Shown one piece after another: positions 532 through 40,259 of a stretch of 54,454 nucleotides of DNA; within the stretch, counting starts at the first letter, position 1, and each line of letters opens with the position of its first letter. Below the pieces are notes generated by a model. That model had not been told where the DNA came from, made no database searches, and worked only from the letters and a program-made list of their open reading frames with translations. The translations under genes and the position numbers were made by a program. Source of the stretch: Pelomyxa schiedti (taxonomy: Eukaryota > Protista > Evosea); NCBI GenBank assembly GCA_020536535.1, contig JAHLWZ010000897.1:1-54454 (forward strand), written 5' to 3'.

Positions 532-3500
532 ATGTCATCGCCCCAGCAGCAGCCACACCTGCACGGCCCCGGCGGCGGGCCCCTCGTCACCCCGCCCTCC
601 CCCGTCCCCTCCTCCTCCAAGTCGCATTCCTCCTCTTCGCACTCGCACGGCAGCAAGCACCACGGCCACGACCGCGACAAGGGGAACACCACCACCACGG
701 GGGGGTGTAGCTCGTCTTCGCCGTCGTCGTCCCCCACGATGGGCAGCAGCCCCAGCCCCCACCACGTCCACCACCCGCCTCTTCCTCCTTCTCCATCCCC
801 CTCGCCCTCCCCATCCTTTTTCCCTGCCCCCCCCGCCCCGGTGCCCATCTCGGCCACCCTCACCGGGGGCACGGGGGCGGCCAATGTCGTGTACACCAAC
901 CCCGCGACGGTCCCGACAACCGGGGTTGTGCTGCTGGTGCAATCACAGCCACAGACACAGTCACAATCGCAGTCGCCATCGCAATCGCATTCGTCGCTGT
1001 CGTCGTCGTCGGGCACTATCACTAGCGGGGGCGGGCTGGGTGGTGTGAGCCAATCGACGAGGGAGTTGTCATCATCCGGGCCATTGCCATCATCACCTGC
1101 TACACCTGCTGCATCCACATCAACAACAACAACATCAACAACCACTACTACTACTGGTACTGGTTATGCAAATGGAAGCAGCAGTGGCAATAATGCAAGT
1201 GGTACTACAGGTTATGGTGGAATAGGTACTTCCGGTGCGGCGAAGAATGCTGTATTCGTATCTGGTGCACTGCCTTCAAAGGGGGCTCCTATATCGACTT
1301 CAGCGATTCTCAAGGCACTGGTGATGGGTGGTGCTGGAGGAATGGGTGTACTGACTCAAATAAGGCCTGTCTCTGTGTCTGGTTCGTCTACTACCACCAC
1401 AACTGCCACTGCACTGAGTTCTGACAATAATGATACCGCCTCGAGTACTGCGCTGCCGGGGTCTTCGGTGGCAAATTCCTCCGCTGCTGTGGATGTTCTG
1501 GAAGATGATCCTGATGATGTGGTGGATATTGTTACAAAGCCTGTATTGGTTGGTGCCCCTTTTAACAATTTTTTTAAAGGATTTATGAGTTTATAGTCAA
1601 GGCAAGCCTCAATCAAATTCCTGTTGCGCTCTATTTCCGGCCAAGGGCCTTTGGGTGACGCAAAGAGGTTCTTCATTGACAATTCTATAACACTTCTATG
1701 GTGCAAAGATTTACACACACACCCCGTTATGGTGAAAATATCTGATGATGGTAAAGTGGTACTCACACCACCTGAAGGTTTTTTCCCGAGAGCTCTTTCC
1801 TATTTTTACCACTTCGGTCCAGGTGTTCCTGGTGAGACTGAATACATCCGATCAGATGATATGGATGTAATTCCTGGTCAATATAATAAAATATTTGATC
1901 TTGTAAGAATGCGGGATCGCCTGGATTGTAGTTTCAGTTTATATTCCGCCATGTACCACTTCCCAATACTCGGTCCCCTTACTTGAGATAACAGTCACCT
2001 CCAGGCATTCCTATCATTTTGTTGCTCGCACAAAAGAGCAATGCGTATCAGTTGTGCAAACCCTCACAAAGCTAGCCAATGCCTCTCGCCCCCCACTTCC
2101 TGACGCCTACATTTTTGTTGAGAAGTTCTGGAGACAAGCAACAAAAACCTCCAATGTGATGTCATTTGACGAAACAAGAAAACTCCTTAAAGAAATGCGA
2201 GTTTCCACTACCAGAAAAACGAATTAATTTCTCTTCAGGAATTTCAAGCCCACCAAAAAGCTTCTGAGGCGCAGACTTCAGGTTTCCGTTTATCTACCTT
2301 TTCACGATGTCGATGTTGAGATTTATCTTTCACACTAGGAATACTTTGGAGATGAATCACCTCTTGGGATAAGCAAGTTCTGTGTTTTGATATATGCCTT
2401 GATGAAGCGTCAGGAGATCGAGGATATTTTCAATGGTCTAACCAAGTTAAGCTTCCTCAGCCTTAAAGATTTAATCGTGTTCCATTCCCGTGATCAGCAG
2501 GTTTATTCATCTTGTGCATTCGGTGCATTACCAAATTCAAAACTAGGAAAGTGGATTTAACTCCGCTGATGCAGCCCTAATTATGAAGCAATTTGGTAAT
2601 GTTGTAGAAGAGGACATGCCTACACCCACACCGGCCCCCACTTCCGCAAGGACTTCTGCTTCAATCTCCCAGGCTCCAAGTGCGCCCCACATGGAACTTC
2701 TACTCCACGGTTTTGAGTCCTACTTGTTGTCTCCAAAAAATCAACTCATGAAACCTGGGCACAACACCTTGCACCAAGTTCTCCATATTCCCTCCATAAA
2801 AGGAATGGCTAACTTTTTAAAGGACATGACTGCCCCCATCAACCATTATACAATTGCTGCCTGCGAAAAATTACCTTCCAGCGATTCTTACCTAATTTTA
2901 TTTCGATACAGCTGTGCTCGATATATAGAAGGTTCCTAAAAACACTTCCTTTTTTTGTTTTAAACCCGAAAAAGTTGAGGTACTTGATTCTGATGACCCT
3001 GCAACTGCAGTTCCAATGACACACTTCGGCAGATTCCAGGATTTCATTGGCCTTGTAGCTCATCACGCTTTCACAATTACTCAGTAGTAGTCATATCCCC
3101 TTTTCCTTTTTCATAACGGAATCTCTCAGATTCCCACTAATTCTAAATTTGATAATCAAATGCTCTGCCAAACATCAGGTAATAACTCTTTTAAGTATTT
3201 GGTATTCTGACTGTACACAACAGCTTAAGGCAGCAGAAATTTTAGAAAATACCCTTGGGACTACTCTTCCCCCAGCTCTTTGGAAGACCCACCCTGCACT
3301 TCGATTCTTACCCTCTCCTCATCAGTTACAAAACAACATCTTATTGATGGTATGGAATCTTTCTTTTGAAAGTTTTTTTTACAACCCCAGGGGGATTATG
3401 ACACCACAGAAAAAGCATTAGGAAATTTATTCTTTTTCCACAGTCACAGTTTTGACTCGTTTCAACAAATGAGTAACTGTTTCCTCATTTCATTTCTTGC

Positions 3501-10311: not shown

Positions 10312-12116
10312 TCAGGATTTTCCGCCGGGACCCGCAAGCTTTGATGGATGTGGTGTTTTGGCAATAACAACGGACCTCTGTTGTGATATTCCAATTCTGC
10401 CACCTTCTCCCTTCTTGTCTGTTGGTTTGAGAACCTTTTTGTGTTAGTTTCATCAGTTTTGCTGCGGTTGTTTGTACCTGGAAGGAACACATCAGTGTTT
10501 CGTCTACACTCATCATTGCACCGGCGTTGTCAAACTCGCCACAGTAGTTTGGCGCACTGAATATGGTAACAAGTTGCCTTCTGGCAAAGAATTCGTAGCC
10601 ATCCTCCACTACCTTCGTTGTTCGTTATGAAATGAAAAGAAAAGAAAAAAAAAGAGTGGAATACCTGATGGGCCCGACAAACGAGGTCAAGGTCATGTTT
10701 CTTGAGGAATTGTGCCACAATGTCACTACCGAAAACATAGCTTACTCCCCGGTCAGTATTTGCACCCCAGCCTTGTTTGCCCCTGTCAGGATCACTCCAT
10801 AGTAAATCACATAGAAGACCCGAGTTTGGTACGTCGGTGGGTCTCATTATCTGCCTCATATTGAATCTAGAGGAGTGTAAGGAGCGAACGTACACGCGTT
10901 ATTTGATCCATGGCTGAGAGATCAGGACTGAGTCCACCATGCATACAAAAGATCTTTTCGTCAACGATGGCTGCGATAGGGAGACAGTTGAAACAATCGG
11001 TGAATACTTTCCACAGTTTGATGGTGTATCTCCGTTTACCTTTTTGATAGTTAGTGGAAAAAGATTCTACATAACAGTTACATTCATCAAAGAACCCGTA
11101 AATCCTGTTGATTGAGGCACATTCATGGTTCCCTCTGAGAAGGAAGAAGTTTTCAGGGTATTTGATTTTGTAAGCAAGGAGAAGTGATATAGTTTCCAGT
11201 CCTTGTTTTCCTTATGTGGGTGAATATATATTTCCTCACATTTCTGAGAAACAGGTACCTCTGTCGACGTAGTCTCCTGTAGAAACGAGTTAAAAGTACG
11301 GAGTAAAAAGTGGAGTCATACCAAGAAACAAATAGTTTGATGTTGGGGGGAATCCTCCTTTCTCAAATAATCTAAAGAGGACTATGAAAATATATTCAGT
11401 AAGAGAAAATGACTCACTGAAGTAGGTCCGAAAATTGACCATGTATGTCACCTAGTTTTGTTTAATTGGTCACCGATTTACACCATTTTCAACAAACAAA
11501 CCCATGATTTTCAACGGGGCATCCAGTTCCAGCAAAGCAGGTTGCGACATGAAAATTTCTCTACTCTTCAAGCACAAATACCTGGCAGTGGTTCATGTTT
11601 GAAAATGAAAAAAGAAAACAAAAAAGAAAAAGAAAAAAAAGGAAAAGGAAAAGGAGGCTTGGAATTGACCCAGTGAAGTGATGTATATACTAACCTTATT
11701 TCATGCTCAGTCAAGTGCACAGGCTTTCCAGGCTTATTAGGCACAAACGACGACAGCCTCTGAATGATGCTGTCCACATCGACCTCTCCACTCTCGACTC
11801 CCATAAGTGTGCCGACCCCACTCCTCGTGGCCGTCCCGCTACTAGCCGCCGCGGCCGCGCTCGCCGGTTGCGCCGCCGCCGCCGGTGCCGCCGCGTCGCC
11901 CGAGCCCGACGACGGCGCGTCCGACGACGCCGAGGGCGGGGGCGGCGACAGCGGCCTCTTGGGCTTCGTGGCTGTCATTTCCTCGTCGTCGTCATCGTCG
12001 TCGGCGGCGGAAGACGACTGCGGGGGTGGGGGAGACGGCGCCCTGCGCCCCGGCGACGCCGCCGCTGCTGCTGTGGTTGTAGGATCCGCGGTGGTGCTGC
12101 TGCTGCTGTCTGTCAT
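10312..12116 (-). CDS. PPP1C: Ser/Thr protein phosphatase PP1 catalytic subunit with N-terminal low-complexity extension; multi-exon
   Basis: [40 protein letters not shown] and the PP1 signature [14 protein letters not shown]. Confidence 0.95.
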
Positions 12117-17201: not shown

Positions 17202-17381
17202 CACTCACACCTGATCAAAAATTATGATCGAATTCTGATTGGCTCAAGGCTGTTGCTGACTGATTCTTGTAGAATCAGCATGTCTCTCTTCTGAAGCCAA
17301 CCACTCAAAGTTGTCCAAGAGTTTGGTTTGATGCGAAGGTTACTTTATGTCCATAGGTTTTTTACAAGCATTTACAATGTT

Positions 17382-19917
17382 TCACACACTGCTTTTGTGC
17401 TCAACACCTTTTGAGATCTTTTGGAGGGCATCCTGGGCAGAAAGCCTGTCAGCCTTGTTGTCTTTCATCATTTCAATAAGCACAGTCACAAGCAACGTGG
17501 CAGATGCATCGCTGGACTCCACAGCAGCAGTGCACCCCGTGCATGCAGGAGCTACCGAGGAAACAGCAGGCACGGGACCCAAGGACAGGGGGAATGAAGC
17601 CCGCAAGGTCTCCGTGCTGAAGTGGCAGCGGCTGCACGCCTCGGAGCCGATGAACTTGTTGGATGCGGGCAGCAGGGCGTCGTAAAGCGCGAGGGCCAGC
17701 GAGAACGAGTCGCACTTGGAGTAAGAGAATGTGCCGTGGCCGCCGGCCTGGGCGAACCTGCATAGCTCAGGGGGCACGGCCCCGGGGAGCCTGGGCGGGG
17801 GCACCGGGGCGGAGGGCTGGACTGTGACCTGGAGTCCCGCCGCGTCACCGGCAAGGACGGCCTCGCCAAAGTCGATGAGGGTAAGCCTCTTGGACTGCTC
17901 GTCAACTACGATGTTCTGGTCGGTGATTCCTCTGTGATTTTATTAGATGACTGTTGTTTCTTTTGGCGTTGGCGTTGGCGTTTGCGCTTCTGATTTGGAG
18001 TGTGGAATGGAGAGAGGAGAACCTGTGAACTATATGATGAGACTCGAGGTGAATGATTGCCGATAGGCCTTGCGCAAGGATTCTAAGTGCTAATTGGGCC
18101 TTGGCCTCGGGGCACTGAGACAACAGGAACGACGACAGCGGAATGCCACCCCAAGGCATGAGGATCACGAGTGACCTGATTCTCTCCAGGTTCGGGTACG
18201 CCAGTTGATCAGCAGCAGCTAGCATAGCCATATATTCCGTCGGTAAACTACAGGTTCGTGTTGTTATTGTTTGGTTGTCCGGCAGTTGGGGGCCTTACCC
18301 TGGCACAACAATGGCTCCAAGAGGGTGAACGATATTCTCGTGACGGGGGAAAGATGACAGTGTGACACACTCGGCCATGTACTTCCGCCTCAGAAGAGTT
18401 TGTGTCTGTTCGCCTCCATCCCAGTTGAAAAGGACCTTCATGACCATTGCAGTTTTGACCGCGCTGTTGTGCGGTGTGTACTGCACCCTGAAAGCCGCAG
18501 CACATTGGCCTACCCCCAGTAGTTTCTCCACGGTGAAGTTACAGATATTAGCCGAAATAAGAGATATCATTGTGTCAATGGTTCTCTGTACAACACTGAT
18601 GAGTTATAGAAAAGCGACGCGTATATATACCAAATATCTTTGTTTTTCAGCCTCTTCCCGAATCCTTTCTTCATTTCGGAGCTGTTAAACAATCAAATGA
18701 ACGTCAACAGAAAATTCACTTTTATACCTCTTCATTGCTATTCTCCATCTGGCTCATGAGAGCTTCGTTTTCGGTTTGGAGCTGATATTTTAAAGATTAG
18801 TATTCTGCTACTCCAAAGGAGGTTTACTGACCTGGCGTTTCTTTCTTTCCAAGTCTTCCAGATGGGTCCTTAGAGCCCCCACTTTTTGTTCCAGTTCATC
18901 CCGCCGTTCATGCAGGGGCACATAAGGCCGGAACTTGATAAATCCCGCAACCACCTTCGCGGCGCCAGTGTGGCCGATGTTGGCAGCCTTCTCCAGCCAC
19001 TCCATGGACTGCATCATCGACTGCCGGACGCCGCGGCCGTCCCTGAGGCACACCCCAAGGTGGAACATGGCGATGGGGTCCCCAGCACTCGCGCCCTTCT
19101 CGAACATAACCGCCGCTCTCTGCTCCGCCGCGCCGCCGTTCCGCTCCGCCTGCTGCCTGCACAGGAGATGGTACAGCAGCCCAAGCTCTCCAAATGCCTC
19201 GCGGCCTCCGTCGCAGTCCACGGCGTCCGCGAACAGCTGCGCCGCCCTGTTGGCGTCCACGCGGACGCCGCCGGCGCCCACCGCGTGGCACTCGCCGAGG
19301 AACACCATCGCCCTGCCTCCGCCCGCCGCCGCGGCCAGGCTGAGGATGTCGACCGCCTTCGCTGCGTCCTTTGGAGCCCCGCATCCGTGGAGGTGGCACC
19401 AGCCGAGGTACGCGAGCGCGTCGACGTCCCTTTTTTCTCGGGCGGCGGGCCACAGGAGAGACGTGGCGGTCTCGGGGTTCCTGTCGACGCCCTCGCCGTG
19501 CAGATAGCACAGGGCCAGGCATATGTCGCCGAGCCAGTGCGATCTTTGCTTCCGTATTTGCCAGAACAGGGAGACTGCCCTCGCCGCGTCTTTCTTTACG
19601 CCCATACCGCTCTGGTAGCACCGGCCGAGGTTGCACATCGCGGGGGCGTTCTCCATCTCGGCAGCTCTTTTCCATAGATCCACGGCCCTGTGTGGGTCTC
19701 TGCGACACAACCCGTTGGCGCCCTTGAAGTACAGAACCGCGATTTTGTTGAGGCCACTACCGCTGTGCGCCTTCTCGAAATTCTGCTCGGCCAGAGTGAT
19801 GTCCTGCCGGACACCATGATCCCCGGTGAGGTGCCACTGGGCGAGAAGCAGAGAGGCCTTATCGTCCCCTTGGATGGCCTTGTCCATCACATCGCAGGTC
19901 GAGTCTGTATTTCCCAT
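17382..19917 (-). CDS. Sel1-repeat + coiled-coil + PINK1-like pseudokinase (copy A); multi-exon
   Basis: MGNTDS start; Sel1 repeats (AMCNLGRCYQSGMGVKKD); kinase motifs LLGVGQCAAAF, VMKVLFNW, HENIVH, HRGITDQN, DFGE, PPEL and YSKCD. Confidence 0.85.
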
Positions 19918-20119
19918 CTCTCGTCCTTTTTTTTTTCGGGAAAATGCAACAAACCAAAATTTTTGGCGTTTAAGTGATGCCGACAAGTTGGCCCTAGCAC
20001 AACTTCCATGATCCGAGTTGTCAGACAACCCAAGTTGCTTGTGTGTCGCCCTTGAATGCACCGCAACCCCTTTTTTCTCACTGTTGTGAAAAAACCAGTA
20101 AAATAGTCTAAGTGACACT

Positions 20120-22914
20120 ATGGGCGACGCCAACAGCTTGTACAACCGCGCTTGCCTTGCCAAAAACCCCGAGGTGGCCGTCTCGCTGTTGCACCAGGCA
20201 GCGGGGCTCGGGTCCGCGGACGCCATGGCGCGCCTCGGGTGGTGCCACTTCAGCGGGTCCTGCGGGGTCCCGAAAGACATGTGCCACGCATTCACGTGGT
20301 TCGTCAAGGCCAACCACCCGCTGGCTGACCTGCCTCGCCAGGCACTACAAGTACGCTGGCGACATGTTCAGTGCCCTCACTACTTGGGAGATACTGGCGG
20401 ACCAAATGGGCGACCCCGCAGCCACGTGCTGCGTCGGGTGGTGCTACCAGTTCGGCCTGGGCGCCGAGAGAGACGTGAGAAGGGCGGTGGGCCTGTACAG
20501 AAGGGCCATGGGCCGCGTCGAGAGCTCCGCCGTCGCGGCCATGCACATGGCGATATGCCACTTGCACGGGGAGGGGGTGTATAGGGACCCTGCTATCGCC
20601 GCAACGCTGCTGCTCTCGCGAGCGGGAGAGAATGTGGACGCGCTCGCGTACCTTGGCTGGTGCCACCTCCATGGCTGCGGGGTTCCGAAGGACGCAGCAA
20701 AGGCGGTTGACATCCTCAGCAGGGCTGTGGCGTCGGGCGGAGGCAGGGCAATGGTGTTTCTTGCTGAGTGCCACGCGGTGGGCGCCGGCGTCTGCTTGGA
20801 TGACAGCAGGGCAGAGCAATTATTCGCTAAGGCTGTGGACTGCGATGGAGGCCCCGAGGCATTTGGAGAGCTTGGGCTGCTGTATCATCTCCTGTGCCGT
20901 CAACAAGCGGAGCGGAACGGCACCGCGGCCGAGACGGCGGAGCAGAGAGCGGCGATTATGTTCGAGAAGGGCGCGAGTGCTGGGGACCCCATCGCCATGT
21001 TCCACCTTGGGGTGTGCCTCAGGGACGCCCGCGGTGTGGAAAGGTCGCTGCCGCGGTCAGTGGGATGGCTGGAGAAGGCTGCCCGCATCGGCCACAGTGG
21101 TGCTGCCAAGGTTCTTGCGGGTTTCTCCAGATTCCTTTCCGGGATTCCATTGGCGGCAGCCAGCAGTGTTGATAGGAAGGAAAGTGAGTGTGAGGCAGAA
21201 CTGGAACTGAGAGAAGTCGAGGAACTGACGCAAAGAGTTCCAGAACTGACGAAGCAGGTGGAGGAGGTTACGAGATCGATTTCAGTGGTGAGTGTGTTAA
21301 ATAGCCAAAATCCCGCAAACAACAAAACACAAAAGTCAGAAAACAAAAGCATCAAGTGCAATAAAAGCAATTCTAACGACATTTGTTTCCAGCTCGAAAG
21401 TCAGAATGTAGTGCTGCAATATCAGATAATGAAGAGGGCGACGATTGACATCATGAGAAAAGAAATATCTGAAAGACACAAGGTGAGTGTGACGCGGCAT
21501 TCTCTCCAAAATAACATCTGCACCGCAGTCCATCATTGACACAATGGCATCCCTTATCTCAGCGAACATTTCCAATTTTGAAGTAGAAATACTCCTGGGA
21601 GCTGGCAGCAATGCAGCAGCATTCCAAGTGATATATCCCCACAATACGGTCAGAACCCCAATGGTCATGAAGGTCATTTTCAACTGGGACGGAAGCATTA
21701 ATCAGAGGCAAACCCTTGTAAGGAAGAATTACATGACCGAGTGTGTGATACTCTCGCTGTTCCCGCGTCACGAGAATATCATTCACCCTCTCGGAGTCAT
21801 CGTTGCGCCAGAGTGAGACCACATCCCCCTTCTTTCAATGCTAACCTGAATAACGGTGCTTGCAGGTTGCCGGCGCACTTTATTGAGAAGATCCCACCTT
21901 CCATGAATGTGTATCGGGAGCTGTCACGACACAAGACACTTGCGATCCTCATGCCTTACGGTGGCATTCCGCTGTCATCGTTCCTGTCTTCTCTGTTGGA
22001 AGTGACACCCGGCAGGAAGGCCCAAGTGGTCCTGGAAATACTTGTGCAAGGCCTATCGGCAATCATGCACCTCGAGTCTCATCGCGTAATTCACAGGTTC
22101 TCCCCTACTCCCTCCTCGCATCAATGCACCAGTTCGAAGTAACCCGGCAAAAAAAAAAAACATGGCAACAAACACAAAAACAAGCCACAAACAAACAAAT
22201 AACATAAACCACAGAGACATCAAAGAGGACAACATTCTGGTAGACCCAGATTCCAAGAGGCTGACCCTCATCGACTTTGGCGAGGCCGTGGTTGCCAATT
22301 CCGGCAACGATGCGGCGGACCTCGAGGTCACCCTCCAGCCCTACGATTCCGCGTGGGGCAACATAGGCACCATGCCTCCAGAGCTGAGGCTGCTCGGTGC
22401 GGCCCAGGCCCGGGCCCCTGGCGGCCACAGCACCTTCTCTTACTCCAAGTGCGACTCGTTCTCGCTGGCCCTCACCTTTTACAACGCCCTGCTGCCCGCA
22501 TCCAACAAGTTCATCGGCTCCGAGGCGTGCAGCAGCGGCCCATTCAGTACCGCAACCCTGCTGGCTTCGTTCCCCGTGTCATTCTGTAATTGTTCCCCGG
22601 CCGCGGCCTCTGCCACGCTGTCAACAACAAATAAAACCACCATGACGACCACCACATCGACGATAAGCGGCGGAGGAGGCACTGCAAGCGTGGTCACGAC
22701 CACGAGCAGCACAACCACCACCACAACCACCGCGACCACGTCTACTCCCGGACACCAACAACAACATCATCATCCAGAGGATCAGGCTCATGGGAACCAT
22801 GGGGAGGTGATTGTGACTGTGCTTGCAGGGATGATGGATCCCAACAGGAGCTCCAGGGTCTCTGCATCTGACGCCCACAGCATGCTCCGTCCCTATCACC
22901 ATCACTCCTCGTGA
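20120..22914 (+). CDS. Sel1-repeat + coiled-coil + PINK1-like protein kinase (copy B); frame shift or cryptic intron near 20300-20341
   Basis: MGDANS start; Sel1 repeats; kinase motifs LLGAGSNAAAF, VMKVIFNW, HENIIH, HRDIKEDN, DFGE, GNIGTMPPEL and YSKCD. Confidence 0.85.
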
Positions 22915-36615: not shown

Positions 36616-38159
36616 TCAGGTGCTGTCGTTGCCTTTTGACTGAAGAATACCGAGTTGGGCAATTGAATTGGCATGACCGAGGTTGGCAGCCCTCAGCCAC
36701 AGTCTCATTGCCTCGTGTATGTCCTTGGAAAACCCATCAATTCCTTGCCGGTAACGAAATGCGAGGTTGCACATTGCCTGTACACTGCCGCCATCAGCAG
36801 CCCTCTGGTACAGTATCATTGCCTTGTGGGCGTCCTTGCCAACGCCATCACCCTTGTAATAGCACACACCAAGGCTGCACATTGCCCCGGCATGACCAGC
36901 GTCAGATGCCCTTTGGTACAGTTGCACTGCCTTGTGAAAATCCTTGCCAACACCGTCGCCATTGTTATAACACCAACCAAGGTTGCACATTGCCTGTGGG
37001 TCACCACAATCAGCAGCCCTCTGGAACAGTGTCACTGCCTTGCGCATGTCCTTGTCAACGCCTTTGCCATCGTAATAGAAGGAACCGAGGTTGGAAGTTG
37101 CTTGGGCATCGCCAGCATCAGCAGCCTTCTGCCAGAGTGCCACTGCCTTGTGAATGTCAGAGTCAACACCTTGACCATGTTCGTAACACATGCCAAGGAT
37201 GCACATTGTTGCGGAGTTACCAGTATCAGCAGCATTCTGCCACAGTGCCACTGCCTTGTGAAAGTCCTTGTCAACACCGTCTCCATTGAAATAACACAGA
37301 CCAAGGTTGCACATTGCCTGAGCACTGCCAGCATCAGCTGCCTTCTGGTACAGTGCCACTGCCTTGTGTATGTCCTTGCCAACACCACCAACACCGTGGT
37401 CATAACATAGGCCCAGAGATGTCACAGAGGAAGCACTCCAGAGAATCTGACCCACAGAGCAATTGATCATGAGGGGACTGGTGCTGTGCTCATCACCGCG
37501 TGATGTTGCTGTGGATGCTGCTGGCATCTTTGTTGCACCACTCATTTCACTAAAAATGTGTGCTGCTGAAGATGAACTTGGGTGGTTGCCTGTCGGTGAT
37601 GAACAGCAATACAGCCTCCACAGGGCAACAAAGTGCATGCACGACCACGAATGACCCAAGCCCTGTTGATGAGGATTATCAACATTGGCTCTCGAAACTG
37701 CTGTTGACACAAGGTCAGCCCATTCAGCAATCACTGCTGTTTTATTGCGGCTAGCATCGTGCTGGTCTGATGTCGCATTGATGTGACTCAACACACTCAC
37801 GCAATGTGCTCTCATTCTCAGTGTTGTGAAGGAGATGGCGCGAGAGAAAGCCCGAGACAGGCACGGTGGAATGTGATGATGAAGTGACACGTGGTCGTTG
37901 ATGACACAACGGAGGCAAACAAGGAACAACAGACCAGGCAGGTAATCGCATTCATCATCTTTTATTTGTGCTGGGTTGGATGAAAACGAATAAATGAAAA
38001 CGAAATAATACACAGACTATGATTGATACTGCTGGTCTCGGCTTCAAAGAGGGAGGAAGCATTTGCAACGAGAGCAAGGGCAGAGTCAATGTTTCCCACT
38101 TGCAACTCAAAAAGTGCCCTCATCATCGCCTCGTTTCTTCTTGTGTCGATCGCACTCAT
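36616..38159 (-). CDS. Sel1-like repeat protein (about 7 tandem 36-aa repeats)
   Basis: Repeats of AMCNLGLCYxxGDGVDKDxxKAVxLxQxAAD in the 465-aa ORF; probable short 5' exon MSAIDTRR and an intron near 37970-38015. Confidence 0.88.
36690..37410. repeat. Tandem ~108-bp repeat array encoding Sel1 units
   Basis: CAGTGCCACTGCCTTGTG-like and GGTTGCACATTGCCTG-like motifs recur at 108-bp spacing. Confidence 0.9.
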
Positions 38160-38561: not shown

Positions 38562-40259
38562 ATGTCTCACGAAGACAACGAAGAGCGAAGTTGCGGTTAC
38601 GACATTGACGACAACGACGACCCATTACAAGAAGAACCAGAACAACAACACGCACAAGCACCACCCTCAAAAAAAGGAAGAACAACAACAAAGGAGACTG
38701 CCCAAACAACAAGCTCAAAGTCAAAAGAAACACAACAAACAACACCCAACATCGGAAATGGCCCAATCGATGACGTCCCATTATCGCTACCACAACGACA
38801 GAGACGACGTGCCCCTGGAGAAACGAACCCAAAGTCAGAAGTAACAAAACCAAAACCAAAAAACACAACAACAAGGAACAACAACCAAGTTCAGCCAATT
38901 ACACCACAACCCCATGCATTTGACCACCTGCAGCAACCCCTGCAACTCCCCCTTCATGCCTCTGTGTCCCTTAATGCACGGGACCAGTTCGTTTCTTTGT
39001 TGATGGTGACACACCCTCGTTGTGGCCAGCACAGCTCTGTGTCATTGCTATTGCCAGCAGTTTCGACCTCACTCTCATCAATGTCATCAGAGTTGCCGCC
39101 ACAACAACAGCAACAGCAACAACGAGAGTATGACCACCGCTTGGCTATCAGGCTGGTGTGGGAGTACTGTAACGAAGTGAGCAGGCTATTTTGTGTTCCT
39201 CTGGTGCTTCCGACATGCAAGTGCGTGGCCCAGTTCAGTGTTTCTGCTGCTTTGGGCTCAGCCATTGGCGGAATGCGCTGCGTGTGCGCAACTGTTCCTG
39301 GAAGGCACGCTGTGATTGCAAATCACAGGAACGTGGTGGAGTTTCAACTTAAAGTGGCTGGCTTCTCAACGTCGTACCACCTCAGTAACATTGTCGATAG
39401 CGCCAAGAGCTGTGTTCTGTTGAATACTAATGTAGGCTCTTCCGTGTACAACAATGCCAAGTGGTTTGTGTACTTCCGGCCAGGGGGCCGGACACTTGGA
39501 ATTGCCAACACCTTGTGGGAACCACAACCAAACCAACATATCAACTCCCCCACAGTTGAGTTTCCAGTGGTGGAATTATGCGGCAAATCTGAGCGCGAAA
39601 GCATTTTCTTCAGCCAAACATACCCTGATGAGGGTGTGGTGTGCACCATAACTAACATTCCTGGTGGGACAGACTACATTGTTGCTTTGACAAAGCTTCA
39701 ACTTGAGCGAAGCTGGTCAACAAAAAAGTTGACCGTGCTGAGTTCCACCAGGTTCCAAGCCAAAGTTGACAGGGTCTATGCATCCCTTCTTTTGTTCAAA
39801 AAAGCTGGAGCCATGGCCTTCATTCTATGCGGTTGCAGCACGCCTCAGCCTGAGGGTGGAAGAAGGCTTATTTTCCAAGTCGATGAGGGTGCAACCACTG
39901 ACAGCACTGACACCACCAATTCAGTGCCTGTTTTGTTGCCCATGCAACAAATGCTAGATAACGAATCAGTTAGTGTCTCCCAGCTGAGTAGCTCACTGTT
40001 TTGCACTGTCTCTATACCTGTTGTTGAAATATGGGACATCAACCACACCACCACAGGGAGGTCCCTGATGATGATAGAGCTGACTGGACCAGGTCATAGC
40101 CTGGTTGCAGAGGGTGGCCTGTTCATCTGCAGCACCAGGCTGCGCGGGGGGGAAGCCACTGTGGAAGTGACTGACCCATTGACAGGAGCACAAATTCTCA
40201 CCATTTCTGGCATTAGGTCAGCAGGTCACATCCACGATACTGTGTCTTCATGGAGGTGA
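38562..40259 (+). CDS. Intronless hypothetical protein (565 aa)
   Basis: Uninterrupted ATG-started 565-aa ORF; disordered N-terminus, an ARDQFVSLLMVTHPRCG segment, and a beta-rich C-terminal half. Confidence 0.75.
   Translation: MSHEDNEERSCGYDIDDNDDPLQEEPEQQHAQAPPSKKGRTTTKETAQTTSSKSKETQQTTPNIGNGPIDDVPLSLPQRQRRRAPGETNPKSEVTKPKPKNTTTRNNNQVQPITPQPHAFDHLQQPLQLPLHASVSLNARDQFVSLLMVTHPRCGQHSSVSLLLPAVSTSLSSMSSELPPQQQQQQQREYDHRLAIRLVWEYCNEVSRLFCVPLVLPTCKCVAQFSVSAALGSAIGGMRCVCATVPGRHAVIANHRNVVEFQLKVAGFSTSYHLSNIVDSAKSCVLLNTNVGSSVYNNAKWFVYFRPGGRTLGIANTLWEPQPNQHINSPTVEFPVVELCGKSERESIFFSQTYPDEGVVCTITNIPGGTDYIVALTKLQLERSWSTKKLTVLSSTRFQAKVDRVYASLLLFKKAGAMAFILCGCSTPQPEGGRRLIFQVDEGATTDSTDTTNSVPVLLPMQQMLDNESVSVSQLSSSLFCTVSIPVVEIWDINHTTTGRSLMMIELTGPGHSLVAEGGLFICSTRLRGGEATVEVTDPLTGAQILTISGIRSAGHIHDTVSSWR

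Follow-up and report, generated by a model that had tools for sequence, protein, structure and literature searches.

Pseudokinases that lack the aspartate of the His-Arg-Asp (HRD) motif and keep a nucleotide-binding N-lobe are exemplified by HER3 (HRN) and the JH2 domain of the JAKs (HGN), and tandem arrangements of a kinase with a pseudokinase are known from the tandem kinase resistance proteins of plants and again from the JAKs. Plants also have head-to-head sensor/helper immune pairs, among them paired nucleotide-binding leucine-rich repeat receptors (NLRs) such as RRS1/RPS4. Here, we describe two paralogous genes, copy A and copy B, which diverge from a short common spacer in Pelomyxa schiedti, an anaerobic amoeba with reduced mitochondria and obligate prokaryotic endosymbionts, and which each encode Sel1 repeats, a helical linker, and a kinase or kinase-like domain. 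The pair lies on a eukaryotic contig (JAHLWZ010000897.1 of assembly GCA_020536535.1), all 54,454 nucleotides of which make up the window analyzed here, with exons of about 63% GC and short introns of 28–52% GC. From the letters of this window, an earlier note had proposed a dedicated sensor-executor system, in which a dead copy A regulates a live copy B. In our reading, the locus is likely to be a local inverted duplicate within a large and fast-turning-over kinase family, partly homogenized, with A retained as a pseudokinase-type protein and B broken in frame, and not a two-gene system.

Each of the described systems resembles this locus in part. Like HER3 and JAK JH2, copy A has an altered HRD motif (HRG), while the glycine-rich loop, beta3 lysine, alphaC glutamate, and DFG motif are in place and the N-lobe is strongly constrained, though homology to these proteins is limited to the kinase fold. 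Nearer at hand are the tandem-kinase genes P0047 and P0048 of P. schiedti itself, which likewise unite a live and a dead kinase domain from one family, but do so in one polypeptide from one strand, whereas here two genes, one on each strand, encode A and B, and the dead domain of A arose independently within the clade formed by A, B, and their closest paralogue (on contig C1775). With RRS1/RPS4, the locus shares divergent genes, a short common spacer, and one non-canonical partner; on the other hand, the proteins belong to another class, the A/B pairing does not recur in the family, and B is frameshifted. We regard the analogy with plant immunity as a resemblance only. Bacterial Ser/Thr kinases with C-terminal Sel1 repeats (P0008 and P0028) contain the same two domain types, yet in the reverse order with the kinase first; these are ordinary Hanks-type kinases (about 36% identity over 56 residues), and the Sel1 match is at the level of the repeat only.

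Architecture and transcription of the two genes

Copy A (minus strand, 17382–19917) and copy B (plus strand, 20120–22914) are multi-exon paralogues in divergent orientation, whose start codons at 19917 and 20120 are separated by a 202-bp spacer, in agreement with the roughly 200 bp of the earlier note (Table 1). From the ATG at 19917–19915, the six joined exons of A form an open frame of 2253 nt and 750 codons, and the intactness suggested for this copy therefore holds. Sel1 repeats (PF08238) are found in both copies, with four stretches in A (137 bits, E-value 9.7e-41) and matches on each of the two frame pieces of B (38.9 bits, E-value 1.1e-9, and 93 bits, E-value 9.1e-27). The kinase exons are homologous as well, sharing 73% identity in the N-lobe and 64% in the C-lobe. 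Against the kinase profile PF00069, the whole kinase of B (public model P0001) scores 58.5 bits with a cut-off of 31.7 bits, while among the single exons of A, the profile searches of this copy being made exon by exon and its exons concatenated for the frame check and the classification of variants, the N-lobe scores 15.8 bits and the C-lobe exon has no match. Ahead of the kinase, B and the C1775 paralogue have one 90-nt linker exon and A has two (54 and 51 nt), and the predicted model of B places a continuous helix of 69 residues in front of the kinase domain.

An intron within the Arg codon of the HR|D motif occupies the same position in both genes. Following His-Arg, B reads DIKEDN...DFG...WGNIGTMPPE, and A reads GITDQN...DFG...PPPRLPGAVPPE. 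Both codons at the HRD-Asp position, GAC in B (HRDIKEDN) and GGA in A (HRGITDQN), lie exactly where the earlier note had placed them. Its description of an MGxxxS start in each gene holds only in part, as both peptides exist, but the frame that B opens with is not the one in which its gene continues. In the N-myristoylation pattern, a Met-Gly start is followed by an uncharged position 3 and a small residue at position 6; MGNTDS in A fits this pattern, whereas MGDANS in B has an Asp at position 3, a residue that PROSITE PS00008 disfavours there. The membrane anchoring proposed in the earlier note would depend on a Met-Gly start, which occurs in only 3 of 16 annotated Sel1-kinase paralogues.

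Four public sequencing runs, all from one study, contain the region. We regard run X4 as complementary DNA (cDNA) because its contigs skip exactly the predicted introns with their GT..AG ends and carry reverse-complemented tails of the Smart-seq2 template-switch oligo, while the other three runs behave as DNA. Joints in X4 confirm introns 1, 2, 3, and 5 of A, including the junction between HR and G (17931/18023) that the earlier note had singled out for checking, along with introns 2, 3, and 4 of B, and the splice of A intron 4 is matched by a loose end. Given these joints and a GGA codon that is unchanged in the cDNA contig and in DNA runs X1 and X2, both genes are transcribed and spliced as modelled, and the glycine of A is real; a sequencing error or an allele at this codon was rejected, since cDNA and DNA contigs agree on GGA and not GAC. 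Contigs from three DNA runs bridge the spacer, which rules out an amplification chimera as the source of the head-to-head junction. Contigs from three DNA runs also match the window at the frame break of B (see below), and an assembly or amplification artefact was rejected for junction and frameshift alike, as three separate DNA runs cross both without differences.

Between positions 17300 and 23000, the single-cell library contigs of X3 and X4 show 25 single-site differences and one 3-nt deletion (at 22756) when compared with the assembly, which is allelic or between-cell variation touching both genes. The between-run variants, with non-synonymous to synonymous counts of 6:5 in A and 6:3 in B, are too few for any conclusion. 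Two protein searches did not find copy A among public P. schiedti proteins of 275–1403 amino acids, and this spliced and transcribed gene may be unannotated in the public protein set.

Loss of catalytic residues and relaxed constraint in copy A

Copy A has lost the HRD aspartate and the lysine of the catalytic loop, and its WGNxGT/P+1 segment is degenerate, with an activation segment that reads SAPVPPPRLPGAVPPEL against WGNxGTxPPE in the family. Retained are the glycine-rich loop, the beta3 lysine, the alphaC glutamate, the catalytic-loop asparagine, and the DFG motif. Under an operational definition, by which a kinase without its beta3 lysine, HRD aspartate, or DFG aspartate counts as a pseudokinase, copy A is one through its glycine (GGA), as the earlier note had held, and catalytic activity has presumably been lost. 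This pseudokinase reading is supported at the levels of sequence, expression, and selection.

Across 44 C-lobe positions that are at least 90% conserved, 12 are changed in A, 3 in the C1775 paralogue, and 2 in B, as compared with a median of 1 among 73 copies, and the C-lobe of A is thus the most deviant of all. In a C-lobe tree of these 73 copies, the terminal branch of A is the longest (0.50 versus a median of 0.057), and A, B, and the C1775 paralogue form one clade with a Shimodaira-Hasegawa-like approximate likelihood ratio test (SH-aLRT) support of 99. For the ratio of non-synonymous to synonymous substitution rates (dN/dS), we used three-taxon Nei-Gojobori branch estimates with bootstrap intervals, which are approximate. 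Along the branch of A, these gave 0.51 (interval 0.37–0.73) for the whole kinase, 0.15 (0.07–0.32) for the N-lobe, 0.82 (0.59–1.22) for the C-lobe, and 0.58 (0.41–0.84) for the Sel1 repeats plus linker, while B ranged from 0.21 to 0.45 by region. Neutral simulation at the dS of the A C-lobe left the sequence stop-free in 0.5% of runs only. Neutral drift as a pseudogene can therefore be rejected for copy A, because its dN/dS lies below 1 as a whole and a neutral C-lobe would so rarely have stayed open. Here, the expectation that A does not evolve neutrally stands for the whole kinase and the N-lobe, but the interval for the C-lobe includes 1. Constraint on the catalytic half of A is relaxed, a pattern expected of a pseudokinase in which the nucleotide-binding lobe and the repeat array are maintained.

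Since the open frame, expression, constrained N-lobe, and Sel1 array have all been kept, A is most likely a retained non-catalytic (pseudokinase-type) protein and not a dead gene, with a presumed role as a scaffold or binder.

Frame break in copy B

The frame of B that begins with MGDANS ends at a stop at 20582–20584, and the remainder of exon 1 continues in the +1 frame. When the DNA is aligned to the closest paralogue, where one frame of 457 codons stays open across the corresponding site, a 2-nt gap appears in B after position 20314. Public model P0001 removes 43 nt at this place as an intron. However, this stretch has 67% GC, as in exons, while the nine other introns of the pair have 28–52% GC and lengths of 45–118 nt (seven of the nine confirmed by joints); it is moreover shorter than every one of these and encodes residues that are conserved in the C1775 paralogue. 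On account of the exon-like GC, short length, and coding conservation, a genuine short intron, whether the 43 nt of the public model or 46 nt starting from 20296, was judged unlikely, and the GC-rich intron of P0001 is probably an annotation patch that hides a frameshift.

The frame break seems to be recent, because the 5′ piece of B still has a dN/dS of 0.48 against the C1775 paralogue. As the break lies behind the first Sel1 repeat, B could be a young pseudogene, could be translated from an ATG further downstream, so that the Met-Gly and the first repeat are missing, or could be rescued by the 43-nt splice. It keeps all catalytic motifs and is transcribed.

Probable inverted duplication and gene conversion

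The middle of the Sel1 region is present as an inverted repeat, whose arms in A and B are 83–89% complementary over stretches of 150–200 nt. Within this tract, nucleotide identity between A and B is 0.86–0.99, as compared with 0.73–0.82 between B and the C1775 paralogue in most windows there, whereas outside it B is nearer to the C1775 paralogue over most of the gene. Taken together, this mosaic and the mid-Sel1 inverted repeats indicate gene conversion between the arms. By contrast, the helical linkers are the least similar part of A and B, with about 50% nucleotide identity and a different exon structure.

In the history that we favour, a local inverted duplication would have occurred inside a family of Sel1 repeat, long helix, and PINK1-like kinase genes, and the copies would then have diverged. 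Copy A would have lost the catalytic aspartate, the loop lysine, and the WGNxGT P+1 segment, with constraint on its C-lobe relaxing, while holding on to the open frame, expression, constrained N-lobe, DFG motif, and Sel1 array. The head-to-head layout and the common Sel1 tract would be by-products of the inverted duplication and of arm-to-arm gene conversion, and no hallmark of a dedicated two-gene system.

Relationship to PINK1

To place the kinase among solved structures, we used the full kinase of B in a phmmer search of the Protein Data Bank (PDB), in which the top 12 matches were all PINK1 (E-values 1.9e-11 to 8.7e-7), with the next kinases following at about 3e-6. An AlphaFold model of B residues 325–700 (mean predicted local distance difference test score, pLDDT, of 86.8) shows a kinase fold after the 69-residue helix, and a Foldseek search with this model returned PINK1 for all top ten hits (E-value 2.6e-12), with other kinases within one order of magnitude. 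Smaller pieces are less telling. A profile of the C-lobe exon alone matched PINK1 weakly (E-value 0.002), the C-lobe exon of B alone gave no match among the solved structures, and a paralogue open reading frame (ORF) with a retained in-frame intron found PIM-1, also weakly, and the relation to PINK1 is thus clear only with the full annotated kinase of B.

A YSKxD motif follows the APE-like PPE in both PINK1 and the kinase of B. On the other hand, B has Sel1 repeats and the 69-residue helix in place of the mitochondrial targeting and transmembrane N-terminus of PINK1, and its gene is no single-copy orthologue but belongs to a family of about 90–120 copies. Ankyrin, Ras/Roc-type, MORN, and SH3 domains also occur as fusion partners of this kinase. 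The family is PINK1-like, but it is not PINK1.

Size of the family and its dead copies

The P. schiedti genome of 52.4 Mb in 5337 scaffolds has been published together with Smart-seq2 single-cell transcriptomes (PMC8887013). Our search of 52,367,397 bases on 5337 contigs yielded at least 121 C-lobe and at least 146 N-lobe exon matches, which corresponds to a family of about 90–120 copies with Sel1 repeats, a long helix, and a PINK1-like kinase, all such counts being lower bounds. In a protein search, 45 of 46 relatives were P. schiedti proteins, the family being seen there in no other species, and the partner domains included Sel1, ankyrin, Ras/Roc-type, MORN, SH3, and a second kinase. Fusions of the same kinase to ankyrin, a Ras/Roc-type GTPase, MORN, SH3+CS, and CNH/Vps39-like domains include P0052, P0054, P0055, P0059, P0064, and P0081, among others, and several fusions carry misleading public names, such as '3-carboxymuconate cyclase', 'calmodulin-dependent protein kinase', and 'vesicle fusion protein'. 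A literature search that covered fusions of Sel1 repeats to kinases in amoebae, Archamoebae included, as well as PINK1 with Sel1, found no description of the family, nor is it mentioned in the genome paper (PMC8887013).

Our census of the catalytic-loop exon covered about 90 distinct copies, of which about 78 have D-I-K-x-[DA]-N with DFG and about 13 are without the HRD aspartate, the catalytic asparagine, or the DFG aspartate. Besides A, the HRD aspartate is lost in copies on contigs C343 (NIKEDN), C762 (EIKGDN), and C1372 (NFKQGK). The catalytic asparagine is lost in the loops DIKESS, DIKENR, DIKGDT, and DIKGDS, and the DFG aspartate in GFG and GFS. A paralogue on C942 (31388–34834; ORF 1375–2685, minus strand) has a stop-free HR|D intron in frame, such that its kinase reads as one 436-codon ORF, and its loop, DIKGDT, has Thr in place of the catalytic Asn. 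Broken copies with stops are found on C343, C604, and C742.

In the tandem-kinase genes P0047 and P0048, the first domain has DIKEDN and DFG, and the second has DIKESS and GFG. Tandem genes of this type, with loci on C1756 (1–3345), C1632, and C1404, combine a live-looking first domain (H-K-D-IKEDN, DFG) with a dead-looking second one (DIKESS or DIKENR, GFG). Five dead second domains of tandem-kinase genes form one clade, which, judging from these sequences, seems to have been retained. Combinations of kinase and pseudokinase are thus kept in the family, but inside one protein.

Orientation of neighbouring family members

Where a contig carries at least two family genes, these almost always share a strand, as on C343, C20, C1387, C10, C392, C40, C164, C460, and C130. 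Besides the A/B locus, there are three opposite-strand cases, namely C786 (tail-to-tail, with both copies canonical), C1377 (in which one copy is a fragment), and C356 (where over 5 kb separate the genes). C1377 was considered as a second head-to-head pair and rejected, since its minus-strand copy is merely a C-lobe fragment. Head-to-head pairing therefore did not recur among family paralogues on contigs with at least two family genes, of which there are roughly 20, and no tight pair of this kind other than A/B was found on them. Dead copies elsewhere are solitary, belong to arrays on one strand, or serve as the second domain of a tandem-kinase gene. A family-wide pairing of live with dead copies, whose lack the earlier note had itself named beforehand as evidence against its proposal, is essentially absent.

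Alternative explanations for the locus

With B frameshifted and the C-lobe of A the most degenerate of 73 copies, both genes might instead be decaying, A as an early-stage pseudogene and B as a freshly frameshifted one, with transcription as a residue. The C-lobe dN/dS interval of A that includes 1, the failure to find A among public proteins within 275–1403 amino acids, and the stops in the copies on C343, C604, and C742 are in line with such decay. However, the frame of A is open over six correctly spliced exons, its N-lobe and Sel1 ratios each lie below 1, and the C-lobe alone would have stayed stop-free under neutrality in very few simulations, and we therefore consider this explanation unlikely.

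Our preferred reading of an inverted duplicate with a retained pseudokinase-type A has several points against it. Copy A is expressed, open, and partly constrained, and it lies 202 bp from a catalytically intact-looking paralogue, all of which a functional pair would display alike. Both copies are present in one cDNA library, and the proteins P0047 and P0048 make cooperation between live and dead kinases plausible in this family. Moreover, the stretch 19783–21310, comprising the first 169 nt of A, the spacer, and all of B exon 1, is without cDNA cover, which leaves the 5′ structure of B and both transcription starts as predictions only, and both gene conversion and high dS (up to 1.0) make the dN/dS values less sharp.

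Some of these points speak for the pair that the earlier note had envisaged, namely two genes co-regulated from a bidirectional promoter, where dead A regulates or guards live B as a heterodimer (through helix and kinase) and the Sel1 repeats sense a ligand. In its favour are the short spacer, the transcripts of both genes in a single library, the constraint on the ORF, N-lobe, and Sel1 array of A, the gene conversion that keeps parts of the two Sel1 arrays alike, and the tandem genes, in which selection keeps live/dead combinations. We nevertheless found the paired sensor-executor reading to be unsupported, because the arrangement is not recurrent, the live partner is frameshifted, and A and B resemble each other least, and are unlike in exon structure, in the helical linkers, where dimerization would be expected. 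All but three of the other neighbours stand on the same strand, and the other dead copies are without a divergent live partner. A dedicated co-regulated pair is accordingly quite unlikely in our estimation.

A variant of this idea would have A as a trans-acting pseudokinase partner that shares a bidirectional promoter with B and binds or gates B-type or other Sel1-PINK1-like kinases. We rate this as very unlikely, though if true, A would be a two-gene version of the single-gene kinase-pseudokinase tandems in the family, and live/dead kinase modules would have arisen independently in an amoeba that lives with obligate prokaryotic endosymbionts, in analogy with the tandem-kinase immune receptors of plants. 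Lastly, that A is still an active, atypical kinase in which a different acidic residue, such as the Asp at loop position +3 (HRGITDQN), takes over from the lost one is highly improbable, for despite this Asp and the retained beta3 lysine, alphaC glutamate, catalytic-loop asparagine, and DFG motif, the loop lysine, WGN, and P+1 GT are lost together, 12 of 44 conserved C-lobe positions are changed, and constraint is relaxed exactly in the C-lobe.

Coordinates and other features of the window

Table 1. Coordinates of copies A and B and of their features in the window
Feature	Position	Strand	Description
Copy A gene	17382..19917	-	750 codons in 6 exons; Sel1 repeats and helical linker ahead of an HRG kinase-like domain
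A exon 1	18832..19917	-	MGNTDS start, Sel1 repeats (Pfam Sel1 E-value 9.7e-41, 4 stretches); helical linker begins
A exon 2	18728..18781	-	54 nt, helical linker; X4 joints 18781/18832 and 18681/18728
A exon 3	18631..18681	-	51 nt, helical linker; joints in X4
A exon 4	18299..18585	-	Kinase N-lobe with Gly-rich loop, beta3 Lys, and alphaC Glu retained; 73% identity to B N-lobe
A exon 5	18023..18247	-	Hinge to His-Arg of catalytic loop; joint 17931/18023
A exon 6	17382..17931	-	C-lobe, from the Gly replacing the HRD Asp to the stop codon
GGA (Gly) codon at HRD-Asp position, copy A	17928..17930	-	No variant in DNA or cDNA contigs
A arm of inverted repeat, Sel1 region	18930..19425	-	Putative gene-conversion tract; arms 83–89% complementary
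Spacer between start codons	19918..20119	.	202 bp, 43% GC; putative shared promoter
Copy B gene	20120..22914	+	5 exons; public model P0001, 802 amino acids, 'sel1 repeat family protein [Pelomyxa schiedti]'
B exon 1	20120..21287	+	MGDANS start, ATG at 20120
B frame break, exon 1	20299..20341	+	2-nt gap versus C1775 after 20314; 43 nt removed as intron in P0001
B arm of inverted repeat, Sel1 region	20634..21135	+	Counterpart of 18930..19425
B exon 2	21393..21482	+	One 90-nt linker exon
B exon 3	21529..21812	+	Kinase N-lobe
B exon 4	21866..22096	+	Precedes HR-splitting intron
B exon 5	22215..22914	+	C-lobe (DIKEDN, DFG, WGNIGTMPPE) and Thr/Ser-rich tail; Pfam Pkinase match on exon alone
GAC (Asp) codon of HRD, copy B	22216..22218	+	HRDIKEDN

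Elsewhere in the window, a 465-codon ORF (36616–38013, minus strand) encodes seven Sel1 repeats (Pfam E-value 6e-70) with no nearby kinase exon, and is divergent from a 565-codon ORF without a Pfam match (38562–40259, plus strand) that lies about 550 bp away. In addition, a 182-codon ORF (11568–12116, minus strand) weakly matches the N-terminal domain of Ser/Thr protein phosphatases, with an E-value of 1.6e-5 that is just below the Pfam cut-off.

Significance

Taken by itself, the locus is a fairly ordinary product of gene-family turnover, with a retained kinase-dead paralogue beside a live-looking, frameshifted copy. Of wider interest is the family to which it belongs, an apparently undescribed PINK1-like kinase of which this anaerobic amoeba, whose mitochondria are reduced, has accumulated about 100 copies. 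Catalysis appears to have been lost repeatedly in this family, in about 13 of some 90 domains, including a clade of dead second domains. Within it, copy A offers a clean and recent example of a pseudokinase with a close live relative (B or the C1775 paralogue), and would be convenient for asking what role a PINK1-like fold has without catalysis.

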